Shown: one piece after another, positions 591 to 6,500 of the stretch
Layout of the letters: the number at the start of each line of letters is the position of its first letter
How positions within the stretch are numbered: the first letter of the stretch is position 1
Assembly: GCA_904063045.1 (NCBI GenBank)
Contig: CAJFCJ010000021.1
Coordinates: 558,001 to 622,000, forward strand
Reading direction: 5' to 3'
Source of the DNA: Dimorphilus gyrociliatus
Taxonomy: Eukaryota; Animalia; Annelida
Length of the DNA stretch: 64,000 nucleotides
Program-made: the position numbers and the translations under genes
Notes under the pieces: generated by a model
What the model was told of the DNA's origin: nothing
Database searches by the model: none
What the model saw: only the letters and a program-made list of their open reading frames with translations

Positions 591-3500
591 TTAGAATAAA
601 CCAACGTATTCGGTTTTCTCTTGTTTAAAATTAAATTCCTTTACTTTAAGGTTTACACTTTCTAAATATTCATCAATAAATCCGTCGATATCTGGCCGAT
701 AGTTGCTTCTTTCACCACTCATAGAAACGTATTGCGATCCGTTATAAAACCATCCATCGGGTAATGGTTCTTTTGATTTTTGGGATTGAATCTTTTCAAT
801 TTCAGTTGCGGATAGAGAATCTCTTTTCTTTAGATCCCTCAGAAGGGGTTTCTTAGACTTATTTGTCTTTTCCAACCATTCTTTCAAGAACTTTAACTGC
901 ACATCTCCAACTGTTAAGAATATTAGATATGAAGATCCTTTTCTATTCTGTTTGATGGAATTAAAATATCCTCCGGAAGGACAAACTTCAATTTCATTTA
1001 ATTCACCGGAAGCTAATAAATAAATAAGAGCGAAAATAAAATATCAACAATATATCTTATTCTGTTTTGGAAAAGTGAAAAAAAAAGATAATAATATCTT
1101 TTCTCACCAGAAAATCTAACAAAGCCGTAAATGTACACTATTTTCTGTAAATCGGATATCTTAGTTTGAGATAGAGCTGTTTGGGGACAATAATAAGGAA
1201 AAGGATTAAGACTAATGATTGTGGCAAAATATATAAGAAGATTCTGACCAATAAATCCATTATAGAATAATCTTTCGTCAAAACATCCTTTATTAGATAT
1301 ATTGACTAATTTCTCAGAAAATCCGAGTAGAGATGTTCGATAAGTTTGATAAAAACGGATAAAATGATCTATTTCTTCACCATTTCCCACAGTGAAAACA
1401 GTATCAACGAATTTGTTACCGCTAACAATACCTTCAGGTCCAGTCATAAAGACAGCGTTAGCATTCATTGCTCTTATCATCTTTTGTATTTCCAAGTTTT
1501 TATCTAATGCGTATGAAGATGGTGTTGTCCATATAATTGTTGTTGAAAGTCGAATATTATTTTGTAAATTCGGAGATAATTCCTTTGTTTCTTTATTTGG
1601 AAAAACCGTTGAAGCATTGACGCAAGTGGTAATCGATCCTAAAAATTGTTTAAATTATGTAAATTTACAAACAAAACAAAATAAACAGTAATAAATTAAT
1701 GCATTTTACCAATTTGAATATTTTCGTTCTTTAATTTATTAATAATCTGTAAGAGATTAGCGTTAATTGGAAGGGCTAGTATAGAATTTCCTTTTATGCT
1801 TGTATATTTTTGATAAATTTTATCGTAATTAGTTTGCTCTGGACACCAAAGTTGCTCATCAGCTATCAAAGCTACATCTCTGAAAAAAAAACATTTGTAA
1901 ATTAAATTTATCAGAAAACATAGAAGGGTAGGGAAATTATTTAAAATTCTTAGTATAGGATACACTAATATTATTATATTGAGTATATATTTATCTATAT
2001 ATATGTATACAGTGTAATGTATCCCATATTGGTGGCAGAATCATGACCGTTCTTAACCTGTCATTGATATTACTTCTGAGACAGTCAAAGAATTGCCTGG
2101 TAAATGACCCAAGAGTTGAACAGACGATGTGCGTCGTATGATCTAGATTTTGGACGGCTGTACGGTAACCCGCAGTTGCCCCAGAGTCGTTTTCGTCATT
2201 TTGTTTGATTTTAAAGTAGCAGTTTCTGTCATAATCTTTCATAAACCTAGTTTTTTTTATGAGAAAATTTAGAAATAATAAAAAAGTCATAAAAGTAAAC
2301 ATTAAAAGAACACTTAACCTATTAAAGTTGGTTGCATTTTGGGAAAATTTCTTCAAAGTTGTATTTTGCCATTGTTTAAGGAATTCTCGATTTCTTTCGC
2401 AATTTTCATATCTATAGGGGTTAAAAAGAGGTCTAATTGAGTTGTTAAATATGTAAATTTGTAGAATATACATTTCCCCAACGGCTTTTGGTAGTTCTGA
2501 TGCCACTTTCAATTCAACCTTGTCGTTTTCTTTCCACAATGGAAGAATTTTTGAAAAAAAATGACTTGATAAGATCCTAGAAGTTTGATCACTCCTTGAA
2601 TCTATCCAAAGAACTAGCATGCACTCGTTGTTTGACAAACAAAGTGGTATGTAATCCCATGCTAGCCGACGAAGTCGGAAGCAAATAACCAGGGGTTCCT
2701 CTATCGATTGCTGGGGGGAGGGGAAAGTTGATAGTTGTTTTTTTCAAAAGCAAAAAGAGAAAAAAAAGCGGCAATAAAAAGTTTTTTTTAGCTACTATTA
2801 TTACTTGAAAGAAATAAAAACACTATATTTCTGAGCTGTAATTTTACTAATTTCTAGTTAGTAGTTAATTATTTACCCGATCATAAATTATCTTTTGCCA
2901 AACAACATCATCCAAAAGTAAAACGGGAGCCAGATGACAGTGTTCGAATGATAAACCTCTTTCATAAAAAGCTACTTTAACTTCATTAAAGTAGGCCAGT
3001 GTACCCGGGACAAAGATGCTTGATGTTCCCTCAGCCAACCTCTTTCCAAATAGAGCGTGGCGGACGTCCTCAGCATCACCCTCGACCTAATAAAGTTCAA
3101 CAGGTTAGAGAACTGGTTATCGGACGAACGGGGCGGTGACCCTGGTGACCTCGATTACGGGTTAAACCGGGGACAAAGAAAGACGAAGCCGACACCCCTA
3201 CTTACATCTAAGTATACATCTGCTGCCATCCTAGGTAGGAGGGTCGACGTCAGTGGGTTGGAAATAAAAATGGAATCGCCATAGGTCAATGAGCCAATTA
3301 TTTCACCTTCTTCATTTTGTATGTCGTAGATGGCAACCATTAAAGAAAGTACATTAGACCTTTCTAATCGGCACCAAACTTCTGAATTTGATGCGCAATG
3401 TCGAATTAGCGGCCTTGACACGTGAAATTTGTCCAAGTATCTGGGAATTTCTTTCAAACAATGAGCCTTTAATTGAGAAGGATTCGATGCGAAATCTGAC

Positions 3501-6500
3501 GCTTGCTCCAAAATAGTTCTTACAGCACTCCTAAGTGATGTGTATATCCTTTGGAGTCGTCGAATAGTTTCGTCATTTTCAGATATCGTCCTCTCGGTCA
3601 AAGACTCTTTCTTTGTATTACCTGTAACAATATTTTTATTAGAAGAGAGCACATATTTTTCATATAAAAATGAAACACGACGAATGTGAATAAACTTTAG
3701 AAATAAAGAAACAAAGTACAAACTCTACATGTCTTGGAATACATAACCAATTAGGCCCATTCGGCAAAGTTTTGCAAACAAAAAAGCACAGACTAGCACA
3801 GTTGTTACCTAGAGGCTTAAAAATATCACTTTGTTTTGAAAATAAAAGATAAATATATATAGCGAAACTGGAATAAAGAAACTAAATGAAGTCCGTTTTC
3901 GTGTTTATTGTAATCTGTATAGTAAGCTCTTACGAATTCTATACAGTTGATGATATTAGGTATTGATATTGATTGACGCTTTTCAATATGTTTATAAGTT
4001 GTTATAATACTTCTCTTTTACATCTGATGTTTTTTCAGCGATGATAGACTTAAAGACTTTTTTAGGACATACGACAAAACCAAATTGCCTACTAATAATA
4101 CAACAAACGTTCGGTTAAGCATGAAAATACTGGATCTTGAAATTGATCAAGATAAATCCGTAAGAATTTTATTAAATCGAAACACAATTCTTAATTTACA
4201 GAATAATAATGATGAATTTCAAATAGGCAATATCCTTACTAATGTATTTGAGAGTCCGCTGGAAAGAGCCGAGATTAAAAACCCTAATTAAATCGTATCC
4301 TATTTACTTCCGTAACGAATCAATACCTAATCAAGATAAGAAGATTTATCATTTGTTATGGCATCCTGACTTTTTTATTGCCAACTCTTATGGGGATCAT
4401 CTCGTACCAAGTTTAAATGTTGAAGGGAATATATTTTTTTCTATGCAAGAAAATACCGAAGTTACTCTATCTGTCCCGTAAGTTTAACTAACAATTGAAT
4501 TCTAACAGAAAAAGCTTTGTTAAATTATCTTATTCTTTAATAGGATTTCCACAAAGATTCCTTGTCCCAAAACTGGATTATCTTATGGTTCTAATATAAT
4601 TTGTAACGTACGATTCACTAGCTGTAAGTAAGCTGCCCAAGAGATGGCGCAAACTTACAAAAAGAAAGAAAAACTTAATAATATTGCTCTTTTGTTTTGA
4701 TATTTTTTCCAGACAAGCATAATAAAGGTGATGTGAAATTTATACCAAGTGCAGAACAACCTATAAGTTTTAAGAAGGATTTAGAACTCACAAAAAATTT
4801 AAAATTGGAATCGTATCAAACTTCAGCTATATGTAGAAAATCGCAGTTTCCATGCACAGATTTAAAAATTTCATTTAAACCGTCGTGGATGAGATCTGAA
4901 TATCAACAAGCCTATACTATAGGAGTATTTACAGTTATAGCCTCTTGGATTGGATTTTGGTTAGAGAAGGATAGAGATAGAATACTTTTATCAACACTTT
5001 TAGTAACAAGTTTACAAATATACAAAGTTGGATTTACTTTATCATGCCACGGAAAAGTAAAAATCTTCCTAATAGAAATTTTACTTATCTATATTTATAC
5101 AATTAACTTATTTCTTTACTATTAATCAATTTTTTGTCTTTTTTCCCTTTTATTTAGATTGGAGAGAAGGCAATTGAATTATGGCTGTCAATTTGCATAA
5201 TTTTTATACTTTTAACAATTTTTCAATTCGCTATTGTTCGAATTTTAATTGAAAAAATTCCAAATACTATAAAATCTTTTAAAAGAAGCGACAAAGATTT
5301 GGTAACTAAATTTTAATAGTGATATTTTTTTGTTAAGTATTGGTAACATCTTTCTTAAACAGGCCTATTTTCCGCCTGCTTCGTCTTTGGAAAGAATAGC
5401 AGTAGCAATTGACACTTTTTGCGGTTTAATTCTATTCCCTTTAGGTTTTATAATAATTAATGTCATTGAGTGGCCGACAGTTAGGTCTATTTAGAGATGT
5501 GCAACTTATATTGTAGATTATAGAGAATGTTTGTACAGTATTAGTTAAATAGTAAACACTCACCATTTATTTTTAAACAACCATTTCTTGTGAAAAGAGT
5601 CCTTGCAAAGACGAAACCTGATTTTGGTTCAGTGGCGCAGCATATGATATGACCTGCTATATCTCCATTAATCCCAGTATTTTCTAAAGTGCAAGAAGAC
5701 TCCATCCAATGTTGACGACTAATTAAAGGTTTCAAAGTGGTCTTTGCCGTATTTGAACCGAATAAACAAAATGGTTTGAGTCGTTGTTCAAGCTTTGCTT
5801 TCGTTTCCGTTGGATATTTTCTCATATAATGATTATAATAAGATAGAAGAGGCTAAATTATATAGAGAATATACAGTATATTATTGTTATGATCTATCAT
5901 GTTTCAATTATAATACAAAGATGATTGAGCAACAACCTCGCATATTTCTGTTTCATTCAGATCCTTTGGTTTAGATAAATATCTTTTCAAGTTTTGAATA
6001 ACTTCTTCCCAATGACGCTCAAACAAAGCGAAATCCTATTTAATACGATAAATTAAGTTATAAATTTTTACATGAACGACATTATATTACATTAATAAGG
6101 AGTTTTTCAAGACCGTAACAATCCATCAATTCAATGAGATCAAGAGTTTGCGATGGTGTGATAAATTTGACCTATTTTTTCAATTTCAGAGAATATATAA
6201 TGTAAATCAAAATAATTGAATAACAAAGTTTGAGTATTTAATTAGTTACCTCGTGTTGGAGAGTAAAGAATCCACCACTATAAACATAGAAAAATTTACA
6301 CATTGTATTATAAAATTCTTGGAATTATGTTTAAACTTACGCATTAAAATCTTCTAGAGCGAAAGCTTGAATTAATGGCCATTTTTCTATGTCCATTTTT
6401 CCTATTTTACTGTTAGAGTTGGTTGTTAAAATGCCAACTCTTTTCGTTGGTTTTATCATTTTAATAAAACAACGAATTTTATAATCTTCACCAACTTCTT

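Follow-up and report, generated by a model that had tools for sequence, protein, structure and literature searches.

In a comparison of 561 sequences of the superfamily of pentameric ligand-gated channels, the Cys-loop proline was the only absolutely conserved residue (100%), and conservation was 94% for the pre-M1 Arg, 77% for the M1 Pro, 88% for the M2-M3 loop Pro and 98% (W/F/Y) for the aromatic residue of beta9 (PMC4795631). The consequences of removing single prolines from this set have been studied in the glycine receptor (GlyR): the engineered P146A (Cys-loop) and P230A (M1) mutants are functional and gate more weakly, with higher EC50 and lower efficacy (PMC9607081). In nature, the beta6-beta7 loop motif varies in the Cys-less nematode receptor Q70GM3 of Dirofilaria immitis, where it is shifted by one residue (YPFE), a variant confined to a small clade (PMC4795631).

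Charge selectivity has also changed within this superfamily. EXP-1 and LGC-35 of Caenorhabditis elegans are cation channels, and swapping the M1-M2 loop changes charge selectivity (PMC4562599). These two GABA-gated cation channels lie within the anion lineage, lack the PAR motif and have acidic residues in front of M2, a concept to which the subunit described here would conform. Both have a normal Cys-loop. An engineered anion-to-cation conversion of GlyR, combining deletion of P-2' with A-1'E, is reportedly due to Keramidas et al. Among annelids, Alpo4, along with other orphan lophotrochozoan receptors, is isolated and fast-evolving and has no known agonist despite broad screens (PMC10338036).

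Here, we analyse a gene of the small marine annelid Dimorphilus gyrociliatus whose product is a subunit of a pentameric ligand-gated channel, 381 aa long and encoded in seven exons at positions 3886–5494 (+ strand) of the window, i.e. the whole analysed stretch of 64,000 nucleotides from contig CAJFCJ010000021.1. All coordinates below refer to the + strand of the window.

Gene structure and transcription

A single spliced transcript contig (run X1; 1324 nt; 3805–5591) covers the whole gene, aligning in seven pieces with zero mismatches and six GT..AG joints that match exactly the six introns of the channel gene, all of which are GT..AG. The 3' end of the transcript is not defined because the contig continues into a host-gene exon that lies antisense to it. 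Searching D. gyrociliatus against its own genome showed the gene to be single-copy; the contig is therefore not that of a retrocopy. The first-pass annotation had raised the possibility that a cDNA would reveal different splicing, restoring C-x13-C with FPxD. Since this one contig splices at all six modelled introns and shows only these, it gives no sign of alternative splicing that would restore a normal Cys-loop, and the gene model is not mis-spliced.

Exon 1 (3886–3959) contains the first ATG of the transcript, with an in-frame stop upstream, and encodes a hydrophobic, signal-peptide-like N-terminus. It is followed by exon 2 (4039–4159) with the N-terminal helix and beta1, and by exon 3 (4227–4477), which extends from beta1 to beta6, includes loops D, A and E, retains WHPD and has a short insertion after beta2 compared with glycine receptors. 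Exon 4 (4544–4623) holds the entire Cys-loop and exon 5 (4713–5056) everything from beta8 to beta10, loop C, the pre-M1 segment, M1, the M1-M2 linker and M2; the start of exon 4 and the end of exon 5 agree with those annotated previously. A short M2-M3 loop devoid of the conserved Pro, M3 and the start of the intracellular loop are encoded by exon 6 (5158–5301), and the rest of that loop, M4 and the stop codon by exon 7 (5363–5494). M4 has the canonical IDT...FPL..F...N...W spacing, which is conserved in the orthologue described below. The intracellular loop is very short, ~29 residues compared with ~85 in GlyR alpha3.

The public gene model, DgyrCDS12804 (protein P0004, 290 aa), is truncated at both ends: it lacks exons 1 and 7, and its protein begins at residue 53 of the 381-aa product. 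The structure given here thus corrects a model from which the signal peptide and M4 are absent, so that cloning based on the database entry would yield a non-functional construct.

Family assignment

The first-pass annotation had placed the gene on an anion-channel-type scaffold, and the family searches bear this out. Among solved structures, the best HMMER matches were to GlyR (E ~1e-17), GluCl (3e-13) and GABA-A (2e-10) receptors, and a local GlyR-like profile scored the subunit at 91 bits. In the phylogenetic tree, an anionic clade that includes the subunit was split from nAChR-like sequences with 100/100 support. The placement within that clade is not resolved by the tree, in which the stem branch of the subunit is long (7.7 substitutions per site, compared with 0.2–1.9 for the others). 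The reference set contained no HisCl, pHCl, EXP-1 or LGC-35 and two sequences named GABA receptors; it was narrow because the final word search yielded mainly vertebrate glycine receptors. A search for the two Pfam domains, suggested earlier, gave a divided result on the truncated, M4-less public protein: Neur_chan_LBD (PF02931) scored above its cut-off (37.2 vs 26 bits, E 2.7e-9) and Neur_chan_memb (PF02932) below (17.1 vs 28.1 bits). Single exons gave weak, sub-threshold scores of 13 bits, with nothing for exon 5; these scans covered P0004 and the single exons.

All four transmembrane segments are present, M1 to M3 as helices in the AlphaFold model and M4 as a sequence pattern in exon 7. The fold resembles those of GluCl and GlyR; only helix boundaries were used from the model, whose mean pLDDT is 63.8 and falls to <50 across the Cys-loop. 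GlyR/GluCl-type receptors, including P0119 (Tubulanus), P0120 (Owenia) and the D. gyrociliatus paralogues, are thus the best matches in both sequence and fold. They have in common with the subunit the second, loop C cysteine pair with a Pro before its second Cys, WxPD in loop A, SWxxFW at the end of M1, KAI[DE]xW at the start of M3 and the M4 motif. The subunit differs from them in lacking the Cys-loop P and D, the pre-M1 Arg, the M1 Pro, PAR and the M2-M3 Pro.

Cys-loop, loop C and the coupling residues

The Cys-loop, CPKTGLSYGSNIIC (4563–4604), retains both cysteines with 12 residues between them (C-x12-C) compared with the canonical 13, and has YGSN where [F/Y]PxD is expected. HMMER aligns YGSN to FPMD of the glycine receptor, with a one-residue deletion directly after it, so that only the aromatic residue of the tip motif is retained and P and D are gone. 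Both the direct reading and the alignment thus agree with the earlier description of a shortened, Pro-less loop. The loop C cysteine pair, CRKSQFPC (4832–4855; CKNSRFPC in the orthologue), is, as noted previously, of the GlyR/GluCl kind and shortened, having C-x6-C against C-x10-C in glycine receptors, i.e. four residues fewer.

The anomaly extends to other positions. An Ile codon (4919–4921) takes the place of the conserved M1 proline, which is present in 8/8 of the nearest paralogues. Alignment to the GlyR-like profile with hmmalign also shows His for the M2-M3 Pro and Asn for the beta9 aromatic residue, and HMMER against solved structures gave the same result for these three positions. The pre-M1 Arg is replaced by Pro according to hmmalign and by Ser according to HMMER, a position at which a local alignment shift of one to three residues is possible. 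Compared with Table 1 of PMC4795631, six of the seven most conserved positions in the superfamily are replaced. The pre-M1 Arg, M1 Pro, M2-M3 Pro, beta9 aromatic residue and Cys-loop Asp are additions to the earlier list of replacements, so the first-pass annotation understated the anomaly. The cis-proline that lies behind the superfamily name 'Pro-loop receptors' belongs to the lost cluster.

No such departure was seen in related sequences: C-x13-C with [FYW]Px[DE] is present in 57/57 other ligand-binding-domain exons of the D. gyrociliatus genome and in 188/188 of the relatives fetched. The departure from the canonical loop is far beyond chance.

The M1-M2 linker and the register of M2

As reported earlier, the M1-M2 linker reads WLEKDRDR and lacks PAR; acidic residues adjoin the start of M2. 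Its EKDRDR segment (4964–4981), identical in the orthologue, replaces the usual xxDAxPAR, and there is no -2' Pro. Among the eight nearest paralogues, seven have PAR and one APR; all eight have Leu at 9', and Leu at 6' is found in them too.

The prime-numbered pore positions are unsettled because the M1-to-M3 stretch is two residues below canonical length and the gap is placed differently by three methods. In the HMMER register, D falls at -1', R at 0', L at 2' and 6' and T at 9'; in the MAFFT register, R is at 0', D at 1', R at 2', S at 6' and L at 9'. With hmmalign, the D. gyrociliatus gene has D at -1' and T at 9', as with HMMER, and the orthologue is set in another register. The secondary structure of the AlphaFold model (a loop at EKD, with the predicted M2 helix RDRILL...TLS at 4973–5044 starting from RDR; pLDDT ~72–76 here) agrees with the HMMER register at low confidence. 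The previously proposed -1' Asp, 9' Thr and 2'/6' Leu thus hold in the HMMER register and fail in that of MAFFT, and the -1' Asp, being aligner-dependent, is not secure.

The acidic residue was also taken as a signature of cation selectivity. We regard this as only suggestive, because the residue is flanked by arginines and the net charge of DRDR is zero. Such a filter, with no net charge and Arg at 0', would also suit an anion-selective or a mixed channel. With Leu at 2' and 6', as in the HMMER register, the pore of a homomer could be so hydrophobic that it does not conduct.

Conservation in a second species and scarcity of relatives

An orthologue in a second species (L009/L008) has seven exons with identical phases and an intact frame. 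The two subunits are 67% identical, with dN/dS of 0.19 at dS ~1.1, and exon 3 includes a run of 36 residues that is identical in both. The most constrained region is that from pre-M1 to M2 (82% identity), where dN/dS is lowest (0.12). Every odd feature is retained in the orthologue, namely the Cys-loop (11/12 inner residues identical), loop C and the FW[LF]EKDRDR linker. Introns are ~50% identical between the species, exons 57–84% and exons of the host gene 70–74% (protein level). Decay with dN/dS near 1 and frameshifted orthologues had been named as what would overturn the first-pass reading; given the intact orthologue, the retention of the odd features and the dN/dS of 0.19, the gene is not a pseudogene.

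The gene is known in two species only, and its relatives are nearly absent among 1.8 billion representative proteins. The exhaustive search of representatives with exon 5 returned only an 86-aa fragment of the orthologue and one weak GluCl-like match (E 4.8e-4), and a word search starting from the public protein matched nothing but the query. In the language-model atlas, exon 5 stayed below the level of recognition. Searching the D. gyrociliatus genome itself yielded no paralogue for exon 5, and the closest paralogues overall are just 23–30% identical.

Discussion

The gene probably encodes a functional, lineage-restricted pentameric channel subunit of the GlyR/GluCl-type branch that was radically remodelled and has been under purifying selection since. 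On our reading, the subunit works, is heavily rewired and has a charge filter that would no longer be of the anion type. The remodelling probably took place on the stem that D. gyrociliatus shares with one or more related species, with purifying selection thereafter, and it affects three sites. In the cluster coupling the extracellular to the transmembrane domain, the Cys-loop is one residue shorter and has G-S-N for P-x-D, and neither the pre-M1 Arg nor the prolines of M1 and of the M2-M3 loop are retained; at the agonist site, loop C is four residues shorter; and in the charge filter, PAR has given way to a shorter linker with DRDR. We infer that pentamers with a pore still form from this subunit, because constraint on the protein is strongest in the M1-M2 region. 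With the anion-type filter gone, conduction would be expected to be cation-permeable or poorly selective. Gating would proceed via a coupling interface unlike that of any studied member, and the ligand is probably non-classical.

The same data can be read in other ways. The first-pass annotation had considered a novel chemosensory or accessory subunit, a rewired cation channel and a non-conducting binding protein. The subunit might be non-conducting or accessory, with no gated pore of its own; assembled alone or with canonical anion-type paralogues, it would modulate or structurally support its partners, or would serve as a membrane-anchored binding protein. The replacement of all but one of the seven most conserved coupling positions would fit such a role, as would the minimal intracellular loop, a loop C so short that it would not cap a canonical agonist site and, in the HMMER register, the Leu residues at 2' and 6' and the loss of 9' Leu. 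Constraint is nevertheless strongest from pre-M1 to M2 (82% identity, dN/dS 0.12), four transmembrane segments with a canonical M4 are retained, and GlyR still gates when either the Cys-loop or the M1 proline is changed to Ala (PMC9607081). Moreover, the nearest paralogues carry 6' Leu, which is therefore no mark of a dead pore. We regard an accessory role as unlikely, with a chance that is still appreciable. It is less likely again that the channel has stayed anion-selective through an unusual filter, in which an Arg next to the start of M2 and a second one two residues upstream would keep a positive electrostatic ring despite the loss of Pro-Ala. Descent from the anionic clade, the Arg that HMMER and MAFFT alike place at 0' and the absence of net negative charge from the filter all speak for such a channel; against it, PAR, present in 7/8 of the nearest paralogues, is missing, the filter contains two Asp and the shortening of the linker resembles engineered anion-to-cation conversions (PMC4562599).

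The very weak Pfam scores of single exons, the lack of exon 5 paralogues and the near absence of relatives among the 1.8 billion representative proteins are what one might see in a decaying pseudogene, or in an artefactual gene model whose true mRNA has a normal Cys-loop. This we consider highly improbable: the modelled introns are seen exactly in a spliced transcript, the frame is open in two species with dN/dS of 0.19 at dS ~1.1, and 11/12 inner residues of the aberrant loop match the orthologue, against ~50% identity for introns. The pseudogene and mis-splicing readings were rejected on the strength of the transcript contig and dN/dS.

Read as a remodelled, working channel subunit, the protein differs from each of the closest described systems. 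In contrast to P146A and P230A, each of which was made in the laboratory as a lone substitution with the rest of the interface intact, its loss of the same two prolines is natural, combined and conserved, and is accompanied by a loop deletion and by loss of the Asp-Arg salt-bridge pair. Q70GM3 is its reverse: there the cysteines are missing, and both the proline and an acidic residue are retained. Whereas Alpo4 is nAChR-like and falls in the cation-type clade, with no Cys-loop change mentioned in the portion of the source used here (PMC10338036), the D. gyrociliatus subunit is of the anion type and has lost the coupling cluster. Compared with EXP-1 and LGC-35, its acidic residue has Arg on both sides and an uncertain prime position, and orthology between the nematode and annelid genes is not expected. 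It is possible, though we say so tentatively, that the gene represents a second structural solution for the coupling of ligand binding to gating, together with an independent change of selectivity in annelids parallel to that of nematode EXP-1 and LGC-35.

The subunit offers a natural test of whether a receptor needs the hallmark residues through which binding of a ligand is coupled to opening of the pore: the Cys-loop proline and five of the six other most conserved positions are missing, yet the gene is transcribed and under purifying selection. Should the subunit gate, channels of this kind could do without the canonical cluster, and the changes that compensate for its loss could be mapped; if it does not, a channel subunit would have been recruited to a non-channel or accessory role.

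Gene structure and transcript

The channel gene consists of seven exons on the forward strand of the window (3886–3959, 4039–4159, 4227–4477, 4544–4623, 4713–5056, 5158–5301 and 5363–5494), separated by introns of 61–101 bases, every one GT..AG, and its product is 381 aa long. The interval 4544–5056, singled out in the first-pass annotation, corresponds exactly to exons 4 and 5. A 1324-nt contig from the public sequencing run X1 (run type not on record) aligns to 3805–5591 in seven pieces with no mismatches, its joints being exactly the six predicted introns; since exon 5 has a single copy in the AT-rich, 78 Mb genome of Dimorphilus gyrociliatus, this contig represents spliced RNA and not a retrocopy. 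No ATG precedes the one at 3886 in the transcript, and an in-frame stop lies before it. Thus, the six exact joints argue, for the assembled transcript, against the alternative splicing that might have restored a canonical Cys-loop.

The public model DgyrCDS12804 (P0004; 290 aa), retrieved via scaffold alignment of the exons, begins at an internal Met, residue 53 of the 381-aa model, and reads past the exon 6 donor into intron 6, ending ...VTKF, so that it lacks the signal peptide, N-terminal helix and M4. This truncation touches 3886–4038 and 5302–5494; the transcript contig backs the 381-aa product. Searches, family scans and structure work used single exons and DgyrCDS12804 as queries, the joined protein being used in local scripts.

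The channel gene lies antisense within an intron of DAAF9 (dynein axonemal assembly factor 9), whose regions occupy 3155–3721 and 5541–5825 of the reverse strand; the exon at 5544–5825 gave a match to Pfam DAAF9, and 5562 is a splice junction at which a transcript contig of the minus strand stops. The channel transcript contig shares ~30 bases (5562–5591) with this antisense exon: the 3' UTR may really extend that far, or assembly may have run on, the contig being unstranded.

Family assignment

Single exons barely score against Pfam. DgyrCDS12804 scored 37.2 bits against Neur_chan_LBD (cut-off 26) and, lacking M4, 17.1 bits against Neur_chan_memb (cut-off 28.1). Among solved structures it matched glycine receptors (GlyR, about 1e-17), GluCl (3e-13) and GABA-A receptors (2e-10), with no nicotinic receptor among the best 60 matches. 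GluCl and GlyR were also nearest by Foldseek and ESM Atlas, and GlyR/GluCl-type receptors are the closest known proteins. The maximum-likelihood tree, built on a narrow reference set, placed the gene within the anion-type clade with 100/100 support, which covers clade membership and not position inside the clade; the stem uniting the gene with its orthologue measures 7.7 substitutions per site. The anion-channel-type scaffold proposed from the sequence is thus upheld by the structure matches and the tree.

Altered residues

HMMER alignments to glycine receptors and a local GlyR-like profile confirmed the shortened, Pro-less Cys-loop recognized earlier: it reads C-x12-C, with Y-G-S-N at the F-P-x-D positions followed by a one-residue deletion. 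Loop C, also correctly noted as shortened, is C-x6-C whereas glycine receptors have C-x10-C, and the M1–M2 linker (EKDRDR) indeed lacks the -2' Pro and the Pro-Ala-Arg (PAR) filter. The M1 proline is replaced by Ile, the M2–M3 proline by His, the pre-M1 arginine by Pro or Ser and the beta9 aromatic residue by Asn. Of the seven most conserved positions of the superfamily (Table 1 of Jaiteh et al., PMC4795631), one is kept; the Cys-loop proline was 100% conserved among the 561 sequences of that study. The M3–M4 loop has only about 29 residues and M4 is canonical. Full-text literature searches yielded no publication that deals with this protein or describes a Cys-loop receptor naturally lacking the loop proline.

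All 57 other ligand-binding-domain exons of the same genome with a recognizable loop carry C-x13-C and [FYW]P.D, the eight nearest paralogues have the M1 Pro (8/8), the 9' Leu (8/8) and PAR (7/8; APR in one), and 188/188 fetched relatives with the loop are canonical, although these sets, having been collected through homology to canonical members, are biased towards canonical sequences. Ligand-binding-domain matches at G000:C66:102957-103538 and G000:C194:38379-38960, on small contigs of this genome, have identical scores and many in-frame stops, and may represent a pseudogene copy, either duplicated or a haplotig.

Pore register

The M1-to-M3 stretch is two residues shorter than the canonical one, and gap placement differs by aligner. 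The -1' Asp, 9' Thr and 2'/6' Leu of the first-pass annotation hold in the HMMER register, where Pro-Ala is deleted (D -1', R 0', L 2' and 6', T 9'), but not in that of MAFFT, which has four linker gaps and two residues added after 14' (R0', D1', R2', S6', L9'); hmmalign placed the orthologue differently again. In the AlphaFold model (mean pLDDT 63.8) M1 is a helix without a kink, EKD forms a loop of three residues, M2 is helical from RDR to TLS and a break of two residues precedes M3; these modelled boundaries hint at the HMMER register.

Position 6' is Thr in vertebrate GlyR and GluCl, whereas Leu stands there in seven of the eight anion-type paralogues nearest to the gene (LGLLTVLTMTTQ; L011–L013 and L015–L017, on G000 C5, C23 and C12), so that Leu here is not unusual. 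Nemertean and Owenia GlyR-like proteins also have Leu at 6'.

Orthologue and selection

An exhaustive search with exon 5 returned an 86-aa fragment with 75% identity (P0001), on contigs L009 and L008 of the Logan-assembled runs SRR23372229 and SRR23372216. These contigs cover the whole orthologue, its seven exons matching in phase, its introns GT..AG and its frame intact; the nesting in DAAF9, with both flanking host exons, is conserved in L009. The proteins are 67% identical (70–74% for the flanking host exons), exon identity being 57–84% and intron identity about 50%. At a dS of 1.14, dN/dS is 0.19 for the whole gene and lowest, 0.12, from pre-M1 to M2. The orthologue keeps 11/12 Cys-loop residues, both loop C cysteines and an unchanged EKDRDR linker. 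A decaying pseudogene, raised as a possible refutation, is therefore rejected: the frame is intact, dN/dS is not near 1 and the odd features are conserved.

A 36-residue stretch, SYPIYF...SYGDH (4265–4372), is identical in the two species at an exon dS of about 0.6. No other block of the protein is as conserved as this one, which takes in a short insertion that follows beta2, an N-E-S sequon and loop A.

Functional implications

The channel gene encodes a transcribed, conserved subunit of the anion lineage in which the coupling interface is rewritten, loop C is shortened and the filter is not of the PAR type. In concept it comes nearest to nematode EXP-1/LGC-35 and to orphan annelid receptors, Alpo4 among them (PMC10338036). 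One alternative is an accessory or non-conducting subunit; because constraint is strongest over M1–M2, the product probably still builds or joins a pore. Since M1–M2 loop swaps switch charge selectivity (PMC4562599), a pore of this kind would no longer be of the anion type; the rival view, that the channel is still anion-selective, draws on DRDR having no net charge, which counts against such a loss. Gating persists, though weakened, in glycine receptors carrying P146A or P230A (PMC9607081), and it may therefore survive in this rewritten anion-lineage subunit as well.
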